Shown here: one piece after another, positions 2,989 to 57,365 of the stretch
Layout: every line of letters starts with the position of its first letter
Position numbering within the stretch: position 1 is the stretch's first letter
IMG/VR virus record: IMGVR_UViG_3300002835_000007
Span: 1 to 64,000 of that record
Strand: one strand, 5' to 3'
Length of the DNA stretch: 64,000 nucleotides
Made by a program: the position numbers and the translations under genes
Notes under the pieces: generated by a model
What the model saw: the letters and a program-made list of their open reading frames with translations, nothing else
What the model was told of the DNA's origin: nothing
Database searches by the model: none

Positions 2989-3056
2989 ACGCTCGCACTG
3001 ATAGTTACGTATCGGTGGAGAGGATGAGTATGACAATCTGGAAAGACAGATATTAC

Positions 3057-4729: not shown

Positions 4730-5695
4730 ATGAATAATGAAAGTAAAACAGTCGATATCGATATCGACAAACAAAAATTTGAAGAGTTAATTGATTTGTT
4801 AGATGCGTACACAACTATCGGGTCAAAAGTTGGTCGTGATGTAATTGACGGTCATGAGTGTGAAGTAAGGTTTGTTTTAGTAACCCCAGATTTAGCGGCT
4901 GAAATACTAGAAAATTACAATAGCGAAAATAGACCTTTTTCACAAAGTAATGTTGCTAAATTAGTTAAAGAAATTAATTCTGGTAATTGGTCATTCAATG
5001 GAGAACCAATATCTTTCAACAGTAAAGCTAATGTGTCAAATGGTCAACACAGATTACAAGCAATTGTTTTAACTGGTATTGCATTGAGATTTTTAGTTAC
5101 AACTGGTCTTGACCCTAAAAGTTTTGCTACTATGGATAACGGTAGAAAAAGAACTGGTTCTGATGTTTTAGCTATTGCTGGTGTTGGTAATTATACAACT
5201 GCTGCATCTGTTTGTAAATTTGTTTACTCTTTTAAAAACGGAAATTTTGGTTCTGTTTATAGAGCATCAGAAAGTAGAACTTTGACAAATACTCAAATTG
5301 AAAGTTACTACACAACATTAACAAATGTTGATGAGAGCATTAAATTTGGTGCTGCTATGTCGAAAAAAAGTAATGGGTTATTGAAAGCAACTATTTTAGG
5401 TGGGTTTCATTATTTGTTATCTGAGATTGATGAAGTTTTAGCTGATGAGTTTTTAACTAAACTATCAACTGGTATCGATTTAAAACAAGGTTCACCAATT
5501 ATTTCATTAAGAAATAGATTACTTAAATCTACAACTGATGATAATTACAGAATCACTAGTGAAACTTTAATGAAATTAATCGCATATAGTTGGGAGAAAT
5601 TCGTTAAAAACGAAACTGTTAAGAATCTTAAATTACCAGAAAACTATGAAATTAATCTTTATGGTTCATCAAACCAAAAAACATTAAATTTCTAA
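4730..5695 (+). CDS. ParB/Srx-like N-terminal domain protein
   Basis: VTPDLA..NRP..W.FNGEPI..NGQHRL. Confidence 0.7.
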   Translation: MNNESKTVDIDIDKQKFEELIDLLDAYTTIGSKVGRDVIDGHECEVRFVLVTPDLAAEILENYNSENRPFSQSNVAKLVKEINSGNWSFNGEPISFNSKANVSNGQHRLQAIVLTGIALRFLVTTGLDPKSFATMDNGRKRTGSDVLAIAGVGNYTTAASVCKFVYSFKNGNFGSVYRASESRTLTNTQIESYYTTLTNVDESIKFGAAMSKKSNGLLKATILGGFHYLLSEIDEVLADEFLTKLSTGIDLKQGSPIISLRNRLLKSTTDDNYRITSETLMKLIAYSWEKFVKNETVKNLKLPENYEINLYGSSNQKTLNF

Positions 5696-5731
5696 AAAAA
5701 CGTAACCGAAGATAGTTTTTCGGTTACACTT

Positions 5732-5805
5732 GGACCTCTAGCTCATTCGGTTAGAGCAACTGACTCATAATCAGTAGGTGCTTGGTTCGATTCCAAGGTG
5801 GTCCA
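5732..5805 (+). tRNA. tRNA-CAT, probably Ile2 (lysidine type)
   Basis: GGACC.../...GGTCC-A acceptor typical of Ile2; ACTGA-CTCATAA-TCAGT. Confidence 0.85.
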
Positions 5806-5932
5806 CATTTAGGTGATTCTCAGTAATGGAGATAGTAGAATCTTTAGAGTATTGAACATGAAAAGGCTGGCAAACCGTTAAATTATTTCTCAGTAGTGCC
5901 TCACATAACCACTATGATACTCACTAAATTAC

Positions 5933-6006
5933 GGTTCCGTAGCTCAGCTGGATAGAGCCACGCACTTCTAATGCGTAGGTCACACGTTCGAATCGTGTCG
6001 GAATCA
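5933..6006 (+). tRNA. tRNA-Arg(TCT)
   Basis: GGTTCCG/CGGAATC; ACGCA-CTTCTAA-TGCGT. Confidence 0.95.
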
Positions 6007-6012
6007 CAATAA

Positions 6013-6138
6013 TGGAAGGTAGCCCAATTGGTAGAGGCAGCGGAATGCAAAAAGATTAATCTGTTTTAAAGATTAAGTTCAGCAATTTAAACGCTATTTA
6101 GGAACCGAAAAGTGTTAGTTCGAATCTAACCCTTCCGA
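6013..6138 (+). ncRNA. tRNA body with ~50-nt CAGCAA module inserted in the anticodon arm
   Basis: TGGAAGG/CCTTCCG acceptor, D arm, GTTAG-TTCGAAT-CTAAC T arm; insert TTAATCT/AGATTAA hairpin + GTTCAGCAA. Confidence 0.75.
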
Positions 6139-6446
6139 CAAAAGAAGAGTGAGCAGCATTAGCCAAGTTGGAACGAGTACCAGCGTGAAGGTCAAAAATA
6201 CTCGGCTCATGACTTCTGAAAAAAAGTTTGAAAAAAACTTGCAAATGTAAAATAAAGTTAGTACATTTGTAGTATAGAAAAAGTTCTTTGAAAAGTATTA
6301 GAAATGAGGGTGTTACATTCTTAAATTTCTTTAAAAAAGTTACTAAAAAACTTGACATTTGCTTAAAAATGTCGTATATTAGTAACATAAAAATTGGATT
6401 AATTATCATAAAATAAAAAAGTAAAAAAAAAAAGAAAAAAAAGAGT

Positions 6447-7082
6447 ATGGCAACACCAAAAAGTACACCAGCAAGAAAAGCTTCTGCAAATACAGAAGTA
6501 GTTTTAGGACAAGCAGCAGCACAAATCGCTAAGGCTGTTAACGAATTAAAAGCAGCAACTGCAACAGTTTCTACTTTATCTGACCAGTCAGAGCAATTAA
6601 CTATGTTAGTAGCTAACAAAGAGGAGTCAATCGCTTCATTAGAAGTAGAGTACGCTGAGAAACGTAGACAATATGACGTTGAGTTAGAATTGTCTTTCAA
6701 AGCTAACCAAGAAAGAGTTGTAAATGAGTGGTTACGTTCAAACGGATACACATCTATTTCAACAGCTGACTTAACAACTTTACGTTCTGATTTAGAAACT
6801 TCTAGAACAAACACTGAAGCAACAGTTAAGAAAGAAGTAGCTACTGTAGCTGCAACTTTAAAATCTCAGTACGAGAATGAAATTAAATTAATTCACTCTG
6901 AGAACAAAGCTGTTGCTGCTGAAAACGCTGCAAAAATTGGTACGTTAGCAACACAAAACTCGTTCTTACAAGAACAAGTTACTAAGTTGTACGAACAATT
7001 AGATGCTGAGCGTTCTGCTGGTATCGAAAGAGCGAAAGCTGGGTCAGTAGGTTCAATTAACGTTGCACCAGCTGGTAAGTAA
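6447..7082 (+). CDS. coiled-coil hypothetical protein
   Basis: ORF track; Ala/Glu/Lys-rich heptads. Confidence 0.8.
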   Translation: MATPKSTPARKASANTEVVLGQAAAQIAKAVNELKAATATVSTLSDQSEQLTMLVANKEESIASLEVEYAEKRRQYDVELELSFKANQERVVNEWLRSNGYTSISTADLTTLRSDLETSRTNTEATVKKEVATVAATLKSQYENEIKLIHSENKAVAAENAAKIGTLATQNSFLQEQVTKLYEQLDAERSAGIERAKAGSVGSINVAPAGK

Positions 7083-7126
7083 TTAGCAATGATATTCTAC
7101 GTGGGGAACTGCGTAGAATGTTACAA

Positions 7127-7267
7127 GGGTAAAAAGATTATTTCAGCAACCAAAAATTCAAGCCTTGTTAATGCCGTGGTCGTGGGTTCGAATCCCACAC
7201 TGTCCATGATAATGGGCGGTTAGCTCAGCTGGTTAGAGCACGTATGAAAAAAAGTTAATCTTGTCCC
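7127..7267 (+). ncRNA. circularly permuted tRNA-like RNA (T arm-acceptor-D arm) closed by CAGCAA stem
   Basis: AAGATTA(7134)/TAATCTT(7256); T arm 7182-7198; ACTGTCC(7199)/GGGCGGT(7214); D arm GCTC/GAGC. Confidence 0.8.
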
Positions 7268-7296
7268 CCAAATTGGAGTCCTCTGCTCCTTAAACA

Positions 7297-7437
7297 GAGT
7301 AATTAAAAGATTGTTTCAGCAATTAAACTCAAAAATTGTATGGATAACAAGCGGTCTGGGTTCGAATCCCAGCATGTCCTAACAGAGGTGTGGGCGTGTG
7401 GTGTAATGGTAGCACAAAAAGAGCAATCTTGATACTC
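7297..7437 (+). ncRNA. second circularly permuted tRNA-like RNA closed by CAGCAA stem
   Basis: AAGATTG(7307)/CAATCTT(7424); T arm 7356-7372; CATGTCC(7373)/GGGCGTG(7392); D arm GTG-TAATGGTAG-CAC. Confidence 0.8.
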
Positions 7438-7441
7438 AAAT

Positions 7442-7519
7442 ATGGCGTTAGCTCAGCTGGTAGAGCACTGTTGGTTTTAACTGGCAGATGGGTCGTAGGT
7501 TTGAATCCTACACGCTGTA
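7442..7519 (+). pseudogene. aberrant tRNA (Lys-like loop, 7-bp anticodon stem)
   Basis: Normal D arm and GTAGG-TTTGAAT-CCTAC T arm; CTGTTGG-TTTTAA-CTGGCAG arm; weak acceptor. Confidence 0.6.
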
Positions 7520-7681
7520 CAATGTTTCTTTGTTTTATAAAACAAAGTGGTGGTAGTCTGGGGTGTTAAAACTCTCGGTCCCAAAAAAATAAGGTTGGTA
7601 ATTTACTGTAAAGCTATGGCTTCCTTCAAAAAAGTGGCACTATCGTTTGGTAGTGTCATTTTTTATTTGTACCTTTGTCAA

Positions 7682-15751: not shown

Positions 15752-15825
15752 TTTCCGATAGACAAACTGGCAAAGTCACTCGCCTTTGAAGTGAGAATTT
15801 GGGGGTTCGAAGCCCTCTCGGAAAT
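15752..15825 (+). tRNA. tRNA-Gln(TTG)
   Basis: TTTCCGA/TCGGAAA; CTCGC-CTTTGAA-GTGAG. Confidence 0.9.
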
Positions 15826-15883
15826 CAAAAAAAATAAAAAAACTTGCATATGTTAAAAATAGTTCATACATTTGTAAAAGAAA

Positions 15884-15957
15884 AATAAAAGATAGCTTCA
15901 GCAATTTCACAACTATCAAACTTTTAATTTGAATCAGAAAATGCTATCTTGATTTAT
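15884..15957 (+). ncRNA. CAGCAA-stem RNA displaying a lone Lys(UUU) anticodon hairpin
   Basis: AAGATAGC(15889)/GCTATCTT(15943), TTCAGCAA, TCAAA-CTTTTAA-TTTGA 15916-15932; own promoter TACATTTG 15867. Confidence 0.7.
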
Positions 15958-16043
15958 TGGAGGGTGGCCGAGTGGTTAAAGGCGGCAGACTGTAAATCTG
16001 TTCTCGTAAGGGTACGGGGGTTCGAATCCCTCCCCTCCAACCA
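15958..16043 (+). tRNA. tRNA-Tyr(GTA)
   Basis: GCAGA-CTGTAAA-TCTGT; long variable arm; ACCA end. Confidence 0.96.
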
Positions 16044-16051
16044 AAAATTAT

Positions 16052-16124
16052 GCCTTTGTAGCACAGCTGGTAGTGCACTTCACTTGTAATGAAGGGGTCG
16101 TAGGTTCGAATCCTATCAAAGGCT
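16052..16124 (+). tRNA. tRNA-Thr(TGT)
   Basis: GCCTTTG/CAAAGGC; CTTCA-CTTGTAA-TGAAG. Confidence 0.96.
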
Positions 16125-16216
16125 CACGTGTTAACTAGGGTCGAGCCACATTTTGCCTCGGTTAACAATAGAAGAAAGAACCTAGAGGTGGCCGTGACTG
16201 TCTTTCTTCGAAATTT

Positions 16217-16289
16217 GCAGATATCGTATAATGGTTTATTATATTAGCCTTCCAAGCCTAGGATTTCAGTTCGATTCTGAATATCTGCT
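16217..16289 (+). tRNA. tRNA-Gly(TCC), imperfect anticodon stem
   Basis: GCAGATA/TATCTGC-T; loop CTTCCAA. Confidence 0.8.
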
Positions 16290-16348
16290 CAAAAAGAGGA
16301 ATAACAAGTGTGGATGCCTCAAGGTACAGCTGACCTACCACACTCTAT

Positions 16349-16420
16349 GCGAGAGTAGCTCAGTGGTAGAGCATCTGGTTACCAACCAGAGGGTCGTGGG
16401 TTCGAATCCCATCTCTCGCT
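16349..16420 (+). tRNA. tRNA-Gly(ACC)
   Basis: GCGAGAG/CTCTCGC-T Gly-type body; TCTGG-TTACCAA-CCAGA. Confidence 0.9.
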
Positions 16421-16428
16421 CAAAATAT

Positions 16429-16555
16429 GGGGGTGTTGAAATGTTAGATAAATCACATTCTGCCTTTTAGATTAAAGAATGTTTGCAGCAAAATCAAAAT
16501 TATTCACGCAAACTGTAAATTTGATAAAACGTTGGTGCAATTCCAGCCGCCCCCA
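16429..16555 (+). ncRNA. tRNA-like ends enclosing CAGCAA module and Tyr(GUA) anticodon hairpin
   Basis: GGGGGTG/CGCCCCC-A; ACATTCT/AGAATGT + TTGCAGCAA; CAAA-CTGTAAA-TTTG; GTTGG-TGCAATT-CCAGC. Confidence 0.7.
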
Positions 16556-16678
16556 CTAAAATAAAATTATAAAAAACTTAAAAAATAAAAACTATGAAAA
16601 ATTCTATCAACATTAAGCGAAAGATAAAACGATAAGGCACTCGGCCAAGCTGGTTACGAGTGTCAATGGAAAAAACAC

Positions 16679-16752
16679 GCCTTCGTAGCTCAGCTGGATA
16701 GAGCACTCCACTTTTAATGGAGGGGTCATGGGTTCGAGTCCCATCGGGGGTA
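16679..16752 (+). tRNA. tRNA-Lys(TTT)
   Basis: CTCCA-CTTTTAA-TGGAG; full cloverleaf. Confidence 0.94.
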
Positions 16753-16757
16753 CATAT

Positions 16758-16830
16758 GTACTCGTAGCTTAGTTGGTAGAGCACTCCGCTTTTAACGGAG
16801 GGGTCAAGAGTTCGAATCTCTTCGGGTACA
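16758..16830 (+). tRNA. tRNA-Lys(TTT)
   Basis: GTACTCG/CGGGTAC; CTCCG-CTTTTAA-CGGAG. Confidence 0.94.
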
Positions 16831-16861
16831 CAACTATTAATAAACCAACATGTAACGTATT

Positions 16862-17230
16862 ATGAAACCAGAACAATATAATAAATTGACTGAACTTATT
16901 GGCAAAGATAAAGCTGATGAAGTAAGAGAAAATCTAATCAAGCATAAAGAGGAAAAGAAAGTTCAGAAACAAAAAGATGCTGCTGAATTAGAAGAAATGG
17001 TTGATAGGATGATACCAAAAACAGATTTAAAAGGTGGTGTTTATTACAATGGTCATAGATGGAGAGGAAAACATGTTGCCATGTGGGATGCTGAAAAGGA
17101 AACGTTTTTAACTATCAACTATACTATGGGTAATTTCTTCTTAGAAGAATTGCAGCATTACGAAGATGTTGCTGAAACAAGAATAGATGGTTTCATACCG
17201 TTTATTGAGATAGAAAAGTTTACTTTATAA
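16862..17230 (+). CDS. hypothetical protein
   Basis: ORF track. Confidence 0.7.
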   Translation: MKPEQYNKLTELIGKDKADEVRENLIKHKEEKKVQKQKDAAELEEMVDRMIPKTDLKGGVYYNGHRWRGKHVAMWDAEKETFLTINYTMGNFFLEELQHYEDVAETRIDGFIPFIEIEKFTL

Positions 17231-24113: not shown

Positions 24114-25103
24114 ATGGAAGCAAAATCAAATATTAACCCATCCGATTATGAAATCGGTGTAGTGGTTGCTAGATTCCAAGTGCATAAATTGCATGAAGGA
24201 CAAAGAAATTTACTTAACATGGTTTATAAAAACCACAAGAAAGTAATTATATTTTTAGGTGTTTCAGTAATATCTGGAACTAAGAATAATCCATTAGACT
24301 TTGCATCACGCAAAGCAATGATACAAGAAGCTTATCCTAAAGCAGTTGTATTACCACTTAAAGACAATCGCTCAGATGCTAAATGGTCACAAGTGCTTGA
24401 TGCTGAAATCAAAACACCTTATGGTGATTTATCAGCGGTATTGTATGGTAGTCGTGACTCTTTTATTCCTTATTATAGTGGTAAAAATCCAGTAATTGAA
24501 TACACAACAGATGTATTTTATTCTGGTACTGAAGTGCGTAAAGAAGTGTCAAGAGAAATATTGGCATCAGAAGACTTTAGAGCTGGTGTAATCCACGCAA
24601 CTTATGCTGCTAGACCAGTAACATATCCAACAGTAGATATCACCGTATACAACGACAAAGGACAAATCCTTATGGCTAAAAAACCAAACGAAGAGTTTTA
24701 TCGTTTTATTGGTGGGTTTGTTGATAGAACTGATGAGTCTTGGGAACAAGCAGCTAAACGTGAGTTTAAAGAAGAAACTGGTGGAAACGCTGAAATTGAC
24801 GATATTAGATATGTTTGTAGTGCTGCTATAAATGATTGGCGTTATGGTAAAACAGAGTCTGGTATTATGACAACACTTTTCATTGGTAAGTTCTTATGGG
24901 GACGTATTGAACCATCTGATGATATTGCATCATTGCATTGGATAAACCCATCTGACGTTTATAGTAGTGAAATCATGCCAGAACACCAAGAGTTATTTGA
25001 ATCTTTGACACGTTTTTTACATAGAACTGAATTAATCAGTAAAAACACTGGTGAAGGTAAAATAAAAGAAGCAAAAGCTAAATACGGAGAAAGTATCGCA
25101 TGA
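24114..25103 (+). CDS. nadM: bifunctional NMN adenylyltransferase / Nudix ADP-ribose pyrophosphatase
   Basis: ARFQVHKLHEGQ, NPLDF..R, SGTEVR; Nudix box GGFVD...AAKREFKEETG. Confidence 0.92.
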   Translation: MEAKSNINPSDYEIGVVVARFQVHKLHEGQRNLLNMVYKNHKKVIIFLGVSVISGTKNNPLDFASRKAMIQEAYPKAVVLPLKDNRSDAKWSQVLDAEIKTPYGDLSAVLYGSRDSFIPYYSGKNPVIEYTTDVFYSGTEVRKEVSREILASEDFRAGVIHATYAARPVTYPTVDITVYNDKGQILMAKKPNEEFYRFIGGFVDRTDESWEQAAKREFKEETGGNAEIDDIRYVCSAAINDWRYGKTESGIMTTLFIGKFLWGRIEPSDDIASLHWINPSDVYSSEIMPEHQELFESLTRFLHRTELISKNTGEGKIKEAKAKYGESIA

Positions 25104-25438
25104 AATTAGCAGTAATTGGTAGCAGAGGTTTTAATGACTATGAGTTGGTTAAAGAAACTTTAAAACATCATACAATAACATTATTGGTTAGTGGTGGTGC
25201 GAAAGGTGCTGATTCATTGGGTGAAAGATATGCAAATGAAAATAACATTCAAACACTTATCTTTAAACCAGATTGGAAGAAACATGGACCAGCAGCTGGT
25301 CCACTTAGAAATACCGATATTGTTAACAATGCCGATACTATCATAGCATTTTGGGATGGTGAAAGTAAAGGAACCAAAGATAGTATCACAAAAGCTGAAA
25401 AATTAGGAAAAAATATAATAATAATAAATACAAAATAG
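25100..25438 (+). CDS. SLOG-family protein (DUF2493/YspA-like)
   Basis: IGSRGF, VSGGAKGAD, AGPLRN, AFWDGESKGT. Confidence 0.88.
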   Translation: MKLAVIGSRGFNDYELVKETLKHHTITLLVSGGAKGADSLGERYANENNIQTLIFKPDWKKHGPAAGPLRNTDIVNNADTIIAFWDGESKGTKDSITKAEKLGKNIIIINTK

Positions 25439-25439
25439 T

Positions 25440-27059
25440 ATGCAATCAGAAACTAGAAGATTAAAAAGAAGTTTAGCACTTAAAGAAGTGATTAAAACTA
25501 GATTGGCAGAAGCAATTAAAAACAAAGATTGGTCTTCAATCGAAACATTAGAAGGTCTTATCACAAAAGTATTGGATAAACCTAACAACCTTGTACTTAT
25601 GGGTGATGCGTATAAATACTCACACCATAAATTCTATGAGGATAACACAACAACAGTTTATTCATACATGGAGTCACGTGGTGGTCGTTTCCAAGAAACT
25701 GTATGGTATGGTCTTGAAATGTTCATTAAAGAATATTTAGAAGGTGTTGCAATCACACAAGAAGAATTAGATGAAGCATATGAGTACTTAGGTACTAAAC
25801 ATGGTGTATTTGGTCGTGATGATGTGTTTGATAAATCTAAATTCCAATACATTATAGATGTTCATGGTGGTAAACTACCAGTACGTATTAAAGCAGTACA
25901 AGAAGGTACAGTTGTAGGTGTTAAAAACGTTCTTATGACTATTGAGAACACTGACCCTAATTGTTATTGGTTAACTAACTTTTTAGAAACAATCATGATG
26001 CAATTATGGTATCCAATTACGGTTGCAACATTGTCACGTGAAGTTAAGAAAATTGTTATCGAATACTACCAAAAAACATCTGCGTTACCACAACACATTA
26101 TGGATACAGTTATTGAGTTCGTATTAAACGATTTCGGTTTTAGAGGTGTATCATCAGTACAATCAGCTGGTTACGGTGGTTCAGCACACTTAATTAATTT
26201 TATGGGTTCTGACACAACAGTTGCATCAAAACGTATCTGTGAATACTATAATACTGACACAATATTTGGTTTATCAGTTCCAGCAACTGAACACTCTATC
26301 ATGACAATGAAAGGTGAAGAAGGTGAAGTTGAAATGATGAGAAGAACACTTGAGAAATACCCTACTGGAATTGTAGCGTGTGTATCTGACTCTTACCACA
26401 TCTTACGTGCATGTTCTGAGAAATGGGGAACTGAGTTACGTGATTTGATTTTATCAAGACCATCAGAACCTGGAAATCAACTGGTTATTCGTCCAGATAG
26501 TGGTCACGTTGTCAACACATTAAAAGAAGTGTTTGCTATATTGTTTGATAAATTTGGTTACACTGTGAATGATAAAGGGTTCAAATTGTTACCACCACAA
26601 GTTCGTGTAATTCAAGGTGATGGTGTAAACATCAATTCAATTCGTGAGATTTACGAAGAATTATACAGATTAGGTATTTCTGCTGAGAACATCGTGTTTG
26701 GTATGGGTGGTAAATTGTTACAAGCTGATATTAATAGAGATACACAAAACTTTGCAACTAAAGCATGTTTCGCTGTCGTAAATGGTGAACAACGTGATTT
26801 GGTTAAATCACCAACAGAAGTTGATGAAAATGGTGAATTAAAACCATCATTCAAGAAATCTAAACAAGGTCGTTTGAAGTTGGTTAAACACTATACAAAT
26901 GGTCAATACTACACTGTAACATCATTGGAAGATGGATATGAATCTGCACATGATGAATTGAGAACTATTTTTGAAGATGGTAAACTATTGGTTGAAACGA
27001 AGTTTGAAGATATTCGTAGTAGAGCTAAAATTTTTAAATTAAACGTAGAATTAGTATAA
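25440..27059 (+). CDS. nadV: nicotinamide phosphoribosyltransferase
   Basis: DAYKYSH, DFGFRG, SVPATEHS, VSDSY, IRPDSG, IQGDG, FGMGG. Confidence 0.95.
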   Translation: MQSETRRLKRSLALKEVIKTRLAEAIKNKDWSSIETLEGLITKVLDKPNNLVLMGDAYKYSHHKFYEDNTTTVYSYMESRGGRFQETVWYGLEMFIKEYLEGVAITQEELDEAYEYLGTKHGVFGRDDVFDKSKFQYIIDVHGGKLPVRIKAVQEGTVVGVKNVLMTIENTDPNCYWLTNFLETIMMQLWYPITVATLSREVKKIVIEYYQKTSALPQHIMDTVIEFVLNDFGFRGVSSVQSAGYGGSAHLINFMGSDTTVASKRICEYYNTDTIFGLSVPATEHSIMTMKGEEGEVEMMRRTLEKYPTGIVACVSDSYHILRACSEKWGTELRDLILSRPSEPGNQLVIRPDSGHVVNTLKEVFAILFDKFGYTVNDKGFKLLPPQVRVIQGDGVNINSIREIYEELYRLGISAENIVFGMGGKLLQADINRDTQNFATKACFAVVNGEQRDLVKSPTEVDENGELKPSFKKSKQGRLKLVKHYTNGQYYTVTSLEDGYESAHDELRTIFEDGKLLVETKFEDIRSRAKIFKLNVELV

Positions 27060-32557: not shown

Positions 32558-33604
32558 ATGAATCAATCGTTATTATTTACCTTAGATGGTAAAACAGAAT
32601 TGGCTGAAGCCATTATTGACTCTGCTAATTTATTTAGCACGGAACATGAAATTAGTTTAGGTTATTTAAACAAACAAAAATTCTCCGATGGTGAGTTATG
32701 TGTTGATTTCACTGACTCAGTTAGAGGTAAATCAGTGTTTTTGTTATCTAGTCCAAACACATCAGATGCAATCATCAACTTAGCATTGGCTATTGATGCT
32801 GCAAAACGTGGTGGTGCTAAAGAGATTATACCTATCTTACCATATTTCCCATATGCTAGACAAGATAAGAAAGACCAAAGCAGAGGACCAATTGGTGCTA
32901 AGGTTATGGCTGAAATTATTGAACAACGTGGTGCAACATCAGTAATCACTTTTGATTTACACGCTGACCAGATACAAGGGTTCTTTAATATACCAGTTAC
33001 ACACATTGAAGGTAAGCATGTTTTCGACAGTTACATCAACGATACTATCAAAAACTTTACTGGTGGTGAAGTTGTATTGTGTGGACCAGATGCTGGTTCT
33101 GGTAAACGTGTTAAACGTATGCGTGACCAAATCAATAAAAGATATGGTGTTAACCTAAACATTGTCATGATTGACAAAACTAGGAAAAAAGCCAACGTGA
33201 TTGATGAAATGATTATTATTGGTGATGTTAAAGGTAAACATGTTATCATATTGGATGATATGGTTGATACTGCTGGTACGTTATGTAAAGCTGCTGAAGT
33301 ATTGAAAGATGCTGGTGCGTTGACTGTAAGGGCGATAATTGCACATGGTGTGTTATCTGGGCCAGCAGTTGAACGAATTGGTGAAAGTAAATTAGCTGAA
33401 TTAGTAATAAGTGATTCATTACCAATGAAAGATGCTAAAGAATTATGTCATAAAGAATTTAATGAAACAAAATGTCATCATATTATAAAAGGGTGCGAGA
33501 AAACAACTGTTATTAGTGTAGCACAACAAATTGGGATGGGAGTTTCTGCATCAATCAATAAACTAAGCTACGAAGCATTAAAATCAATTAAAGCAGTATA
33601 TTAA
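32558..33604 (+). CDS. prs: ribose-phosphate pyrophosphokinase
   Basis: FSDGE, PYFPYARQDK, DLHADQIQGFF, PDAG, DDMVDTAGT, HGVLSG. Confidence 0.93.
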   Translation: MNQSLLFTLDGKTELAEAIIDSANLFSTEHEISLGYLNKQKFSDGELCVDFTDSVRGKSVFLLSSPNTSDAIINLALAIDAAKRGGAKEIIPILPYFPYARQDKKDQSRGPIGAKVMAEIIEQRGATSVITFDLHADQIQGFFNIPVTHIEGKHVFDSYINDTIKNFTGGEVVLCGPDAGSGKRVKRMRDQINKRYGVNLNIVMIDKTRKKANVIDEMIIIGDVKGKHVIILDDMVDTAGTLCKAAEVLKDAGALTVRAIIAHGVLSGPAVERIGESKLAELVISDSLPMKDAKELCHKEFNETKCHHIIKGCEKTTVISVAQQIGMGVSASINKLSYEALKSIKAVY

Positions 33605-39451: not shown

Positions 39452-39832
39452 ATGACTAATAAAGTTAAAATAAAATTAAAAGACATAGTTCAATCTAAAA
39501 AACAGATTCATTGGTCCAAAAAACAATTAAATATGATTGATGGGATTTCTGATAATTATGATGAGGATATAAGTTTAATATGGGTCACAAAATTTAACGA
39601 AATTATTGATGGACATCATAGATATGAAATATTGATTAATAAATTTGGTGGTGAACATGAGATAACGGTAAGACAATTTAATGTGTCAAAAAAAATATTT
39701 AAAACAATAGTTTATATTTTTTTACCATTATCTTTAATTATTTTATTACCTTTGTATTTAATTATTGAACGTTTTAAATTTAAAAAATGGCAAAGAAAAA
39801 AAGAGAACATAGAATTAATGATGAAATCATAG
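39452..39832 (+). CDS. ParB/Srx-like domain with C-terminal TM helix
   Basis: IIDGHHRY. Confidence 0.55.
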   Translation: MTNKVKIKLKDIVQSKKQIHWSKKQLNMIDGISDNYDEDISLIWVTKFNEIIDGHHRYEILINKFGGEHEITVRQFNVSKKIFKTIVYIFLPLSLIILLPLYLIIERFKFKKWQRKKENIELMMKS

Positions 39833-40284
39833 CAAGAACTGTAAGAGTTGATGGTGTTATTATGTCTATTCAAGAAGCATTACATAAAGCTGAACAATCT
39901 GAAATGGATTTGGTTTTAATTAATGATAATGCTGAACCTAAAATATGTCGCATATTAAACTATCAAAAGTTTTTATACGAACAAAAAAGAAAAGACAAAG
40001 AAAAGAGTAAATCACTTGAACTTAAAGAAATAAAGTTAGGACCAAACACATCTGAAAATGATTTATCTTATCGTTCTAAACACATTATTGAGTTTTTGGA
40101 TAAAGGACATAAAGTAAAACTTACTATGCAGTTCAGAGGTCGTGAAATGGCCTTTGTTTCCAAAGGTGAGTTGATTATGTTAAAATTGATTGATTCGATT
40201 TCAGAACATGGGTTGCCAGAAAGTATGCCAAAGATGGAGGGTAAAAGAATGCAATGTCTTCTAAAACCAAAAGTTAAGAAATAA
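39787..40284 (+). CDS. infC: translation initiation factor IF-3
   Basis: INDEI, DLVLI..A.P.ICRI.NY.KF.YE, KEIKL, GHKVK..FRGRE. Confidence 0.93.
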   Translation: MAKKKREHRINDEIIARTVRVDGVIMSIQEALHKAEQSEMDLVLINDNAEPKICRILNYQKFLYEQKRKDKEKSKSLELKEIKLGPNTSENDLSYRSKHIIEFLDKGHKVKLTMQFRGREMAFVSKGELIMLKLIDSISEHGLPESMPKMEGKRMQCLLKPKVKK

Positions 40285-40959: not shown

Positions 40960-41323
40960 AAAAGTTTTGTGTACATTTGTAGATATTTACTAATATGAAC
41001 GTTATGAATATGTTTAAAAGTAGGAAAGGTAAGATAAAAAGTGTTTTAGAATATAAACTTGGTAATAAGTTAGATGATAATGATATCAATGACATATTAG
41101 AAGTTTTTGATGTGTATCAAAAAGATAATTTAGATAGCATTGATAAATTAAAGCGAGATAAAGTTTACGAAACAAAAAGAATTAGTGGTGCATTGAAACA
41201 AACAATCAATGCTCATGGACCAATTACTAAACAATTCATTGGTTCAGCAACCAAAAGGGTTTATGGGTCATTGTTAAACAACGAAAAGAAAGAAAGTTTT
41301 ATAATAAGATTATGGAAAAAGAT

Positions 41324-41842
41324 ATGGAAAAAACAAAAATAGCAATATTTGATTTTGATGGGACATTGGTTAACACACCGATGCCAGATGAAGGTAAAGA
41401 TTTATACAAAGAAAAGACTGGCAAAGAATGGCCGCATAAAGGTTGGTGGTCTAAACCAGAATCATTAGACTTAGATGTTTTTGAAATGCCTACAGTTGAT
41501 GATGTAATTGTTGATTACGTATTAGAAGCAGCAACAAAAGATACAATCATTGTTATGTTGACTGGTCGTATGCAAAACTTATCAGATAGTGTTAAAAAAA
41601 TATTAGATGCACATGGTCTTATGTTTCACGAATACCATTTCAACAGAGGTGGCAGCACTGAATATGCTAAAATGAATACTATGGATGATTTACTTAATAA
41701 ATACCCATCAGTTAGAGAAATAAAAATGTGGGATGATAGAGATGAACACATTCCAATCTTCAAAGAATGGGGAGATAAAAAAGTATCATCTGGTAGATTA
41801 GACAAGTTTAAAATTAAACATGTTATTCAAAATAGACATTGA
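41324..41842 (+). CDS. HAD-family protein (RNA repair-like)
   Basis: FDFDGTLVNTP, GWWS, LTGR, WDDR. Confidence 0.8.
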   Translation: MEKTKIAIFDFDGTLVNTPMPDEGKDLYKEKTGKEWPHKGWWSKPESLDLDVFEMPTVDDVIVDYVLEAATKDTIIVMLTGRMQNLSDSVKKILDAHGLMFHEYHFNRGGSTEYAKMNTMDDLLNKYPSVREIKMWDDRDEHIPIFKEWGDKKVSSGRLDKFKIKHVIQNRH

Positions 41843-42487: not shown

Positions 42488-44473
42488 ATGATTAAAATAA
42501 ATGATATAATAGAAGGGAAGTTAAGTATGAACGCAAGTGGTTCTGCTTATTTGGTGAGTGAGAATATACCAAAAGATATTTACATACACAAATCTAAAAC
42601 AAACAAAGCGTTACATTTAGATAAAGTTAAAATAGAGGTAATCCATGGACAAGGACGTTCTATAGAAGGTAAAGTAATTGAAATTGTAGAACGATTTAGA
42701 ACAGAATTTGTAGGTACAATACAAATAAGTGAGAAGTTCGCTTTCTTTGTACCAGATTCAAATAAAATAATAATTGATTTCTTTATACCTTTGAATAAAT
42801 TAAATGGTGCTATACATGGTCAAAAGGTTGTTGCAGCATTGACTGAATGGAAAGAAGACGCTAAGAACCCTAATGGTAAAATAGTTAGAGTTATTGGTAA
42901 TTCTGGTGAACACGAAACGGAAATACATTCAATCTTAGAAGAATACGGATTACCTTATGATTTCCCAGATGATGTAATAGCAGAGTCTGAAGCAATATCA
43001 GAAGAAATACTACAATCTGAAATAGAGAAACGTATAGATATGCGTGATGTGTTGACATTTACCATTGACCCACATGATGCAAAAGATTTTGATGATGCGT
43101 TGAGTGTTAGATGGGTTGATGGAGTATTGGAAGTTGGTGTTCATATCGCTGATGTGGCACACTACATGCGACCAGAAACTGAATTGGATAGAGAAGCGTT
43201 TGCTAGAGGAACTAGTGTTTACCTAGTGGATAGATGCGTGCCAATGATACCAGAGAAGCTTTCTAACGGACTTTGTTCACTAAGACCACACGAAGATAAG
43301 CTTTGCTTTTCAGTGGTGTTTAAAATCGACCAAAATGGACGTGTGATGGATGAGTGGTTTGGTAGAACAGTAATACATTCTGACCATAGATTTACATATG
43401 AAGAAGCACAATCGATAATTGAGGTAGGTAAACTACCTAAAGATGCTATCGCTGAAGGTGAAACCTTAATATTTGAAAAATCTGGGTTAGGTTCTGTTGT
43501 TGGATGGGATAAAGCAACCAATTTAGGTAATGCTATATTGGTGTTGGATAAATACGCTAAGAAAATGCGTAAGGTAAGATTTAGCAAAGGTTCTATTTCA
43601 TTTGACAAACATGAAGTTAGGTTCAAGTTAGATGAAAACAACAAACCAATTGATATTATATTCAAGATTGGTAAGGATTCCAACAAATTGATTGAAGAAT
43701 ACATGTTATTGGCTAACAGACATGTTGCTCAGTTTATTAATCAAAAAGGTTTACCAATGGTTAACAGAGCTCATGATAAGCCAGATGAAGCTAAATTAGA
43801 AAGTCTTAAAGATTTCATTCATCAATTTGGTTATGAGATTAAAGTTGACACACCAGAAGAAACAACTAAATCTTTGAATAAGTTGCTGCGTGATGTAAGA
43901 GGTACTAGTGAAGAAGAAATGATTACTAATCTTGTAGTTAGAACAATGCAGAAAGCTGATTATAGAACAAAGAATATTGGTCACTATGGTTTAGGTTTCA
44001 AACATTATGCTCACTTTACAAGTCCAATCAGACGTTATCCAGATGTTATTGTACATAGATTGTTAGCGTTGTATTTAGATGATACTAGAAAGACTAACCC
44101 TAACATTGCTAAATTAGATGGTAAGTGTACACATTTATCTGAAAGAGAGAAGAAAGCACAAAAAGCTGAACGTGATAGCATTAAGTTCATGCAATGTGTT
44201 TATATGTCAGATAAGGTAGGTAAAGTTTACAAAGGTATGGTAACTAGTGTTGCTGAATTTGGGTTGTTTATTACTATCGAAGAGAATGGTTGTGATGGGT
44301 TAGTTAAATTATCTGACATAATGGGTGACACATTTGTTGCGGATACTGAAAATTACCGAGTTAAAGGTACTAAAACTGGTGCTTATTTACGTTTGGGGGA
44401 TGAAGTTCATGTAGTCGTAACGTCTGTTGATATTGAAAAAAAGAACATTAATTTATCATTAATTAACCTATAG
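42488..44473 (+). CDS. rnr: ribonuclease R
   Basis: TIDPHDAKDFDDA, RGTSVYL, IEEYMLLAN, HFTSPIRRYPD, C-terminal S1. Confidence 0.95.
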   Translation: MIKINDIIEGKLSMNASGSAYLVSENIPKDIYIHKSKTNKALHLDKVKIEVIHGQGRSIEGKVIEIVERFRTEFVGTIQISEKFAFFVPDSNKIIIDFFIPLNKLNGAIHGQKVVAALTEWKEDAKNPNGKIVRVIGNSGEHETEIHSILEEYGLPYDFPDDVIAESEAISEEILQSEIEKRIDMRDVLTFTIDPHDAKDFDDALSVRWVDGVLEVGVHIADVAHYMRPETELDREAFARGTSVYLVDRCVPMIPEKLSNGLCSLRPHEDKLCFSVVFKIDQNGRVMDEWFGRTVIHSDHRFTYEEAQSIIEVGKLPKDAIAEGETLIFEKSGLGSVVGWDKATNLGNAILVLDKYAKKMRKVRFSKGSISFDKHEVRFKLDENNKPIDIIFKIGKDSNKLIEEYMLLANRHVAQFINQKGLPMVNRAHDKPDEAKLESLKDFIHQFGYEIKVDTPEETTKSLNKLLRDVRGTSEEEMITNLVVRTMQKADYRTKNIGHYGLGFKHYAHFTSPIRRYPDVIVHRLLALYLDDTRKTNPNIAKLDGKCTHLSEREKKAQKAERDSIKFMQCVYMSDKVGKVYKGMVTSVAEFGLFITIEENGCDGLVKLSDIMGDTFVADTENYRVKGTKTGAYLRLGDEVHVVVTSVDIEKKNINLSLINL

Positions 44474-52394: not shown

Positions 52395-52835
52395 ATGAAA
52401 ACGATAGTAAAAAATAAGCGTGGGTACTATGAGTACACCATATTGGAGAAGTATGTTGCTGGAATCAAATTACAAGGTTCAGAAGTTAAATCTATTCGTT
52501 CTGGAAAGGTATCGATAGTTGAAGCATATTGTTTTATTGCCAACGATGAAATCTTTATCAAAGGTATGCACATCGCAGAACACAAAGAGGGTGGTAAACA
52601 TAACAACCACATACCAATTAGGGATAGAAAACTCCTTATGAATAAGAAAGAAATTGTTAAATTAAAACAACAAATTTCACAAAAAGGCTTGACTATTGTA
52701 CCGTTAGAGGTTATATTAACTAATATTGGATTCATAAAGTTAGAGTTAGGTTTAGCCAAAGGTAAAAACTTACATGACAAAAGGGAGACAATAAAAGAAA
52801 AGGATTTAAAAAGAGAATTAGAACGTAATTTATAA
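52395..52835 (+). CDS. smpB: SsrA-binding protein
   Basis: AGIKLQGSEVKSIR, RKLLMNKKEI, GLTIVPL, AKGK..HDKR..IK. Confidence 0.95.
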   Translation: MKTIVKNKRGYYEYTILEKYVAGIKLQGSEVKSIRSGKVSIVEAYCFIANDEIFIKGMHIAEHKEGGKHNNHIPIRDRKLLMNKKEIVKLKQQISQKGLTIVPLEVILTNIGFIKLELGLAKGKNLHDKRETIKEKDLKRELERNL

Positions 52836-56878: not shown

Positions 56879-57365
56879 AAGTTAATGAATAATTTATTTT
56901 AGATAAAATTGAAATTTGTCCATTTTAAATTAGGAATATCTAAATAAGATTCTTACATTTGTCAAATCTAATTAAAACTTTATATCATGTCAAGAAAGAA
57001 AAAAACATTTGATGTATTAGCATTTAAAGAATACGTCAACATTCAACTAGCAAGAACTGATGAACATGCAACAGAAGACTTTAAATGTGGTTTGTCTGTC
57101 GCTTTGGGAGAAGTGTTGCATCGTACTGGTAACTATAATGGGTTTACCCATTTGTATTGGAACGAAATTGGTTGGCAAGAGTGGAGAACTATTGGTAAAG
57201 AAACCGAAGTTTGGGAAGAAAAGAAATTGTTTATCTACGGAACACCAGACAGCAAATATAAAGGAAGTAGATACGCTTTAAGATATTATTAATGATAATA
57301 GGGGACGCTGAAAACCTAGACAGAGTAGGCAAATAATAAAAGTTAAATAAAAAAAAAAGAAAAAA

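Follow-up and report, generated by a model that had tools for sequence, protein, structure and literature searches.

A 63-base CAGCAA-handle RNA carrying a tRNA-Lys-type anticodon stem-loop in a freshwater jumbo phage

A minimal RNA gene between a promoter and tRNA-Tyr

The stretch of DNA analyzed here (the window) covers the initial 64 kb of a 206-kb contig in IMG/VR (IMGVR_UViG_3300002835_000007) that belongs to a freshwater jumbo phage from lake water. Genes lie on the + strand throughout, and ARAGORN finds 19 tRNA genes grouped as two clusters. Just upstream of tRNA-Tyr(GUA) lies a 63-base RNA gene (15889-15951), referred to below as the mini, which is the smallest member of a family of RNAs built on a shared CAGCAA handle. 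The longer span delimited in a first-pass annotation of the same DNA (15884-15957) consists of this gene and flanks only. The mini reads AAGAUAGC-UUCAGCAA-UUUC-ACAACUA-UCAAA-CUUUUAA-UUUGA-AUCA-GAAA-AU-GCUAUCUU-G, and the locus is laid out as follows, where P1 and P2 are the paired elements outside the hairpin and MFE stands for minimum free energy:

15844-15876, + strand: promoter of Bacteroidota type, TTG (15844) ... TACATTTGTA (15867-15876), 13 nt upstream of P1
15889-15896, + strand: 5' strand of P1, AAGAUAGC, with an A before it, pairing 8/8 with 15943-15950
15897-15904, + strand: single-stranded motif UUCAGCAA (family consensus U-N-C-A-G-C-A-A), kept in synteny orthologues
15905-15908, + strand: 5' strand of P2, UUUC, an optional short helix with GAAA at 15937-15940 (MFE fold)
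15916-15932, + strand: anticodon-stem-loop mimic UCAAA-CUUUUAA-UUUGA, its loop (15921-15927) being that of tRNA-Lys
15937-15940, + strand: 3' strand of P2, GAAA, inside an A-rich 3' linker (MFE fold)
15943-15951, + strand: 3' strand of P1, GCUAUCUU (15943-15950), and the invariant trailing G15951
15952-16043, + strand: 6-nt spacer, then tRNA-Tyr(GUA) (ARAGORN)

The mini consists of a terminal stem and one hairpin, with both D arm and T arm absent, and neither ARAGORN nor Rfam (at gathering threshold and at E <= 10) matches 15889-15951 to a tRNA or any other curated family. Its loop, CUUUUAA, is identical to that of both tRNA-Lys(UUU) genes located 700 nt downstream (16679-16753 and 16758-16831); the anticodon arms of these tRNAs, CUCCA-CUUUUAA-UGGAG and CUCCG-CUUUUAA-CGGAG, have GC-rich stems unrelated to that of the mini hairpin. 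The TACATTTGTA box ahead of the gene recurs exactly elsewhere in the window, 20 times in all, always on the coding strand (20/20) and often just 5' of the start of an open reading frame (ORF), and it is retained at the same distance in the relatives L011, L027 and L054. We take the TTG...TACATTTGTA arrangement to be of the Bacteroidota TTG...TAnnTTTG promoter type. These observations bear out the first-pass annotation, which had described a minimal CAGCAA-stem RNA with a bare anticodon stem-loop, a promoter of its own and the same 7-nt loop as two true tRNA-Lys genes.

Between promoter and tRNA-Tyr, the spacer following the mini is fixed at 5-6 nt within this phage group. A tRNA begins 5-10 nt downstream of most minis, so that RNase P would be expected to set the 3' end of the RNA. 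The MFE of the mini is -9.7 kcal/mol (z = -1.15), and folding energy alone is thus a weak indicator of structure.

Conservation, loop repertoire and the handle family

Nineteen distinct minis from at least nine phage lineages were placed in a curated alignment, and the architecture is common to all of them; much of the sampling was done with patterns fixing AAGAT and TTCAGCAA. Of the alignment cells in P1 and the hairpin, 94.7% are paired, compared with 31-47% when the 3' partners are slid, and both-side changes are seen in 11 of the 13 pairs; none of 500 shuffles matches the observed values. Within P1 every pair is supported (8/8), seven of the eight by both-side changes. Among close relatives the compensatory changes include C-G to U-A in P1 and UUUC/GAAA to UUAC/GUAA in P2. 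P2 also occurs as UUUAC/GUAAA, UUUAC/GUGAA and UAUC/GAUA, in a shifted register, and is missing from L006 and L015, and the hairpin stem varies as UUCA/UGAA, UUAGA/UCUAA and UGAA/UUCA.

The RNA also occupies position x in more distant phages whose tRNAs run Gln-[x]-Tyr-Thr-Gly. Here the P1 stems are unrelated to that of the mini (AGAAUGGU/GCCAUUCU, AGGGUGGU/ACCACCCU and AGAGUGAU/AUCACUCU), yet UUCAGCAA, the final G and the CUUUUAA loop persist; L006, L014, L015 and L016 retain UUCAGCAA in this way. Variants of this motif do occur (UGCAGCAA, UACAGCAA and UUCCGCAA), and the 3' terminus ...CU(U)G is found in 19/19 minis. The flanking protein is only about 56-70% identical between lineages that keep both loop and motif. 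A covariance model built from the minis finds one of them in the window (76.6 bits, its own sequence being inside the model), weakly recognizes four related RNAs of the window described below, and detects further minis in other loci. The mini is hereby confirmed to be more than a chance arrangement, on comparative rather than thermodynamic grounds.

The first-pass annotation had proposed tabulating the loops of homologous modules, and these turn out to be canonical 7-nt anticodon-type loops and not random ones: position 2 (U33) is U in 18/19 minis and position 6 (A37) is A in 19/19, as in tRNAs. The statistics were restricted to the 19 curated minis because automatic hairpin tabulation of all handle matches was too noisy. 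Orthologues of the mini have the loop CUUUUAA or CUUUUAU with both stems changed. Elsewhere the loops are UUUUCAU (Glu-type), CUUCUAA (Arg), AUCCAAA (Trp), CUGUAAC (Tyr), CCGUUAA (Asn), UUUGUAA (Thr) and CUUAUAA (Ile), and the UCAAA/UUUGA stem is often reused under differing loops. In L024 (3940-4299, minus strand) four minis with Trp-, Tyr-, Lys- and Asn-type loops stand in tandem. The Tyr- and Lys-type minis are each followed by a long U-run and the Trp-type by a short spacer; a U-run follows three of the four, and the last, Asn-type mini is followed by a tRNA after 7 nt. The U-runs argue that minis are separate small RNA genes. The mimics of the window double the canonical Lys and Tyr tRNAs of the cluster, and as a rule a mimic shares its cluster with a canonical tRNA of matching anticodon. 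Taken together, the comparison demonstrates structure, conservation, covariation, purifying selection on the loop and redundancy with nearby canonical tRNAs.

The handle begins with an A and ends with a G, between which the 5' and 3' termini of the RNA make up an 8-bp covarying stem; UNCAGCAA lies on its 5' side, opposite an A-rich 3' strand. The mini falls within this family by its end-to-end stem, by UNCAGCAA directly 3' of the P1 5' strand and by a hairpin with a U2/A6 7-nt loop. The same handle flanks or interrupts larger tRNA-like RNAs. An intermediate form combines the handle with an anticodon-type hairpin and a T arm, and its loops in close relatives differ mostly in the triplet (CUCAUAA, CUCAAAC, CUUACAC, CUUAUAC). 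In the open form the handle surrounds an anticodon-like hairpin, a T arm, a closed acceptor stem-loop and a D arm, and in the closed form it is inserted in otherwise ordinary-looking tRNA-like genes (Asp GUC, Glu UUC or CUC). Four siblings of the mini lie in the window, two with closed and two with open handles, and ARAGORN calls none of them (0/4):

6013-6138, + strand: tRNA-like RNA whose anticodon arm contains the handle, closed as a hairpin (6055-6085); Rfam tRNA 34 bits
7134-7263, + strand: open handle, short anticodon-like hairpin, T arm, closed acceptor stem-loop and D arm, in YrlA-like order
7307-7431, + strand: second open-handle permuted tRNA-like RNA, hairpin UUGU-AUGGAUA-ACAA; 24.7 bits with the mini model
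16429-16555, + strand: degenerate tRNA-like RNA with Tyr-type CAAA-CUGUAAA-UUUG and a closed handle at 16455-16491 (UUGCAGCAA)

The Rfam tRNA match of the sibling at 6013-6138 contains a 61-nt insertion, and homologues are present in L011, L081 and L123. The sibling at 7134-7263 scores 39.3 bits with Rfam YrlA (7153-7265), under the gathering score of 69, and this match stems from its permuted tRNA-like domain. It was the sole lead to a known RNA family for the mini from Rfam runs, strict and permissive, on the mini itself, the two tRNA clusters and the entire window. Orthologues of the sibling at 16429-16555 in L006, L014 and L085 keep CUGUAAA with a changed stem. The open forms were initially considered as true permuted tRNA genes, as the halves around 7205/7212 and 7380/7392 pair 7/7. 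This idea is weakened because the closed acceptor loops are short (down to 4-6 nt) and freely variable, because no discriminator base is conserved and the acceptor stem-loop of the sibling at 7134-7263 is wholly replaced in a 98% relative (L009), and because canonical tRNAs with the same anticodon are present within the same clusters. Between the two open-handle siblings, CCUCUG (7281-7286) has two alternative pairing partners, a nearby CAGAG (7294-7298) and a CAGAGG within the closed acceptor loop of the RNA that follows (7383-7388). The alternative pairing covaries in relatives (CCUCUA/UAGAGG, CCUCUU/AAGAGG), which suggests a long-range contact or switch at 7281-7299/7383-7388. A separate tRNA at 7442-7520 has an 8-nt anticodon loop (ARAGORN anticodon "ttta"; Rfam 40.5 bits), and this loop differs in a close relative.

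CAGCAA-handle RNAs appear to be a phage-only family of tRNA mimics, previously undescribed in Rfam or in the literature searched: the handle motif has no Rfam family, and full-text literature searches found no paper describing it. Near-identical known phages were not found in the GenBank phage collection. A scan of reference genomes (one genome per species for 185,579 species) with a handle-plus-T-arm pattern, in which AAGAT was fixed in the stem, gave a single true match, on a misbinned 425-kb megaphage contig that is also present in IMG/VR as phage. Since this pattern fixed AAGAT and required a T arm, the scan understates the family, leaves minis unsampled and cannot prove absence. In the collections scanned, handle RNAs are restricted to large phages.

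Expression was approached through contig-level metatranscriptomes over 5900-7600 of the window, in which contigs cannot show absence. Strong contig coverage, from lake and river, is confined to the ORF at 6450-7075, the only well-covered part of this region. One low-depth contig of a relative spans 7304-7468, over the second open-handle sibling (7307-7431), and has one end 3 nt before the handle of that sibling. No spliced or back-joined joints were seen in the metatranscriptome contigs over the sibling loci. The ORF at 6447-7082 encodes a coiled-coil protein of unknown function (phrog_9325) and has two promoters upstream.

Elsewhere, the window encodes IF3 (39787-40281), a HAD_SAK_1 "RNA repair" domain protein (41312-41839) and an RNase R/II-like exoribonuclease with RNB, CSD and S1 domains (42488-44473). 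Nudix, NAMPT-like and PRPP synthetase genes are located at 24114-27059 and 32558-33604, with NADAR, Macro and SIR2 domains in other parts of the window; this set looks like NAD salvage and ADP-ribose counter-defence. SmpB is encoded at 52395-52832 (Pfam E = 1e-52), and no tmRNA gene was found in the whole window by ARAGORN or Rfam. A link of tmRNA and SmpB to the mini family was considered and set aside, the tmRNA model matching generic T arms only; ARAGORN also calls a doubtful tmRNA near the L024 minis (5583-5965). A Ro60 partner was likewise discarded, with no TROVE domain among the window ORFs scanned (25 of 34 matched families listed in one scan). Three large unannotated ORFs of the window have no match among PDB sequences. 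A perfect hairpin, ATCTG-GAAAGA-CAGAT (3036-3051), lies just 5' of tRNA-Asp and also precedes tRNAs in L019 and L054, and at 57298-57331 Rfam reports a DUF805b match (35.8 bits against a gathering score of 35.6).

Possible functions of the mini

Host nucleases are directed at Lys, Tyr and Thr tRNAs, and phages answer with tRNAs of their own (PMC10264068, PMC11464382, PMC11555353, PMC12445682). Against this background we tentatively favor the reading that the mini is a small stable RNA gene offering a tRNA-Lys-like anticodon loop to a loop-reading protein, plausibly a host defence nuclease, and we regard this as possible and some way short of probable. Transcription would start from the promoter at 15844-15876, or, in relatives that have no such promoter, the 5' end would come from release after an upstream tRNA-Gln; an RNase P cut at the downstream tRNA-Tyr would define the 3' end. 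The product would be an RNA of about 63-75 nt, the minimal member of the phage tRNA mimics, whose near-blunt terminal stem may guard against 3' exonucleases. The constant handle would bear variable cargo with a U33/A37 anticodon stem-loop, the cargo here being the Lys-type hairpin alone. The target would most plausibly be a host anticodon nuclease or another tRNA-targeting defence, and the mini would serve as a competitive bait or inhibitor, with translation sustained meanwhile by the tRNA-Lys genes of the phage; function is the weakest step of this scheme. Bait is the most economical reading because the loop and not the stem is selected, because paralogues differ chiefly in the triplet, and because the mimics duplicate canonical tRNAs in a window rich in RNA-repair and NAD-salvage genes. 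This context, with its duplicated Lys and Tyr tRNAs, is compatible with a decoy. The first-pass annotation had suggested a decoy substrate of anticodon nucleases such as PrrC or AriB, or else a donor fragment for repair; nothing in favor of a repair donor was found.

Several points count against bait. A stoichiometric decoy would be poor against a multiple-turnover nuclease unless it were bound tightly and left uncut, and the anticodon types found in minis span many amino acids beyond the known nuclease targets. The analysis turned up neither a nuclease or ligase nor a binding partner that could be linked to the mini. The AU-only hairpin, with five AU-rich pairs and a pairing probability of ~0.08, is thermodynamically marginal, and conservation of AAGAT and TTCAGCAA is partly by construction, since the sampling patterns fixed those letters. 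A decoy also gives no reason for the conserved UNCAGCAA; its unexplained role argues for a specific handle-binding partner and keeps a Y-RNA-like scaffold model alive.

In such a scaffold the handle would bind a dedicated protein, and the hairpin or tRNA-like domain would recruit a tRNA-binding factor acting in repair, quality control or degradation. Ro60/Rsr binds the stem of Y RNAs, and the sibling at 7134-7263 has the YrlA order inside its terminal stem as well as its 39.3 bits on the Rfam YrlA model. The combination of a constant handle with variable cargo follows the logic of Y RNAs (PMC4201824), and the RNase R-like protein, the HAD_SAK repair domains and SmpB are all encoded in the window. 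We nevertheless consider a scaffold rather unlikely: the Rsr-binding motif GNCGAAN0-1G is absent and UNCAGCAA differs from it, the YrlA score lies under the Rfam threshold, the mini is without a tRNA-like elbow, and no TROVE protein appears among the window ORFs scanned and the families listed, whereas known YrlA genes adjoin rsr. Clearly less probable is a handle that serves as a processing signal, excised as an intron where it is closed and joined where it is open in a permuted gene, with minis as circular RNAs or by-products. This would account for a handle that is closed in tRNA-like genes of normal order (between positions 26 and 27 in the Asp and Glu types, in the anticodon loop at 6013-6138) and open at the ends of permuted tRNA-like RNAs. 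Junctions of this dual kind are known from permuted tRNA genes and bulge-helix-bulge (BHB) introns, in Cyanidioschyzon as well as in archaea. Lak megaphages, too, have tRNA "introns" that are unexplained (PMC6784885). Yet Rfam gives no ribozyme or group I/II intron match (E <= 10 over 15780-16900 and 5900-7650; E <= 0.05 over the whole window), BHB geometry is not evident by inspection, closed acceptor loops go down to 4-6 nt and the discriminator base is not conserved. No spliced product is needed either, because canonical tRNAs with the same anticodon are nearby. The lack of skipping or back-joining contigs over the sibling loci, weak evidence as it comes from contigs only, points the same way, and selection on the mini loop would be left unaccounted for.

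The layout of promoter, mini and tRNA-Tyr, with its fixed 5-6-nt spacer and with most minis 5-10 nt before a tRNA, would also suit a cis-acting leader of the tRNA operon that directs or times cutting by RNase P or RNase E, shields the 5' end of the transcript, or senses damage so as to tune tRNA output. We find this similarly improbable, as the mini of L220 and three of the four L024 tandem minis end in U-runs with no tRNA after them, and as such a signal needs neither a conserved anticodon-type loop nor paralogue-specific triplets. That most tRNA parts are missing and that folding energy alone is not significant might instead point to a functionless relic left by the decay of a handle-bearing tRNA-like gene. 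Since both helices show compensatory changes, loop and motif are conserved across lineages with so divergent a flanking protein, and own promoters and terminators are present, decay is very improbable. Hardly credible is a working "armless" tRNA-Lys in which P1 is the acceptor stem, the G the discriminator and UUCAGCAA a replacement of the D arm, even if UUCAGCAA resembles tRNA positions 8-15 (U8, A14, R15) and armless mitochondrial tRNAs have a comparable layout. The T arm required for the CCA-adding enzyme, EF-Tu and the ribosome is absent, CCA is not encoded, two normal tRNA-Lys genes are present, and we know of no bacterial precedent.

In a broader proposal, the handle is a portable module of large phages that couples any anticodon stem-loop or tRNA-like body to one partner, whether a protein or a self-processing reaction; we put this forward as a speculative and rather unlikely generalization. 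If it were true, the handle would provide programmable, anticodon-specific baits or inhibitors against tRNA-targeting immunity, or alternatively the first protein-assisted excision and circularization system for tRNA-like RNAs in bacterial viruses. Either way, minis would represent a new class of viral counter-defence RNA in its purest form. The cleavage of tRNAs is coming into view as one of the main arms of bacterial immunity, and phages are known to respond to it with replacement tRNAs and with enzymes that repair RNA; RNAs that consist of an anticodon arm with swappable triplets on a constant handle would be a third kind of response, and a handle that recruits a protein would make a new type of Y-RNA-like particle. 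The family also identifies many tRNA-cluster "spacers" and oversized "pseudo-tRNAs" of jumbo phages as true genes, and it may illuminate the unexplained tRNA "introns" of megaphages. Being compact and easily synthesized, it is directly testable.

Relation to known RNAs

Among known systems, YrlA (RF02553, PMC4201824) is a modular noncoding RNA in which an end-to-end stem and an adjacent single-stranded motif carry a tRNA-mimicking domain. The mini likewise has a terminal stem (P1, 8 bp, covarying), and the sibling at 7134-7263 shares the order of T arm, closed acceptor stem-loop and D arm. In YrlA the Rsr-binding motif is defined as GNCGAAN0-1G (Chen et al. 2014, PMC4201824), whereas the handle has UNCAGCAA in its place (UUCAGCAA in the mini), and handle RNAs bear an anticodon-type hairpin that YrlA does not. 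The elbow-less mini has no YrlA match at E <= 10, the sibling reaches 39.3 bits against a threshold of 69, and no Ro60/TROVE gene is near among the window ORFs scanned and families listed. Lak megaphages carry tRNA introns termed "enigmatic" (Devoto et al. 2019, PMC6784885, Table S6). They too are unexplained insertions in tRNA genes of large Bacteroidota phages with a closing stem around partial tRNA-like parts (T arm), but they lie at 37/38, measure 80-115 nt and have no CAGCAA, and free-standing minis are not described.

Complete phage tRNAs are known to counter host defences: tRNA-Lys of T5 acts against PARIS (PMC11464382), tRNA-Tyr against retron effectors (PMC11555353) and tRNA-Thr against P2 OLD (PMC12445682), and anticodon-loop variants of phage tRNAs are set against tRNA-targeting defences (PMC10264068). 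These share with the mimics the setting in phage tRNA clusters and the anticodons (Lys UUU, Tyr GUA, Thr UGU), but they are complete decoding replacements, while the mini is unable to decode and carries the loop in unmutated form. Like the handle, permuted tRNA genes and BHB introns use one junction motif both closed (as an intron) and open (at permuted ends). The handle differs from them in showing no evident bulge-helix-bulge, in belonging to bacterial viruses and in having acceptor loops that are seemingly structural rather than processed; no splicing enzyme was identified. In the thrS operator, which mimics an anticodon arm, and in RNA anti-CRISPRs, which are RNA decoys of immune proteins, a hairpin imitates a portion of some cellular RNA and so traps the protein by which that RNA is normally read. 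Neither has the CAGCAA handle, nor does either form a family with interchangeable anticodon triplets. Mimicry of tRNAs by viruses and bacteria is already known, and there is a real chance that the handle is something new.
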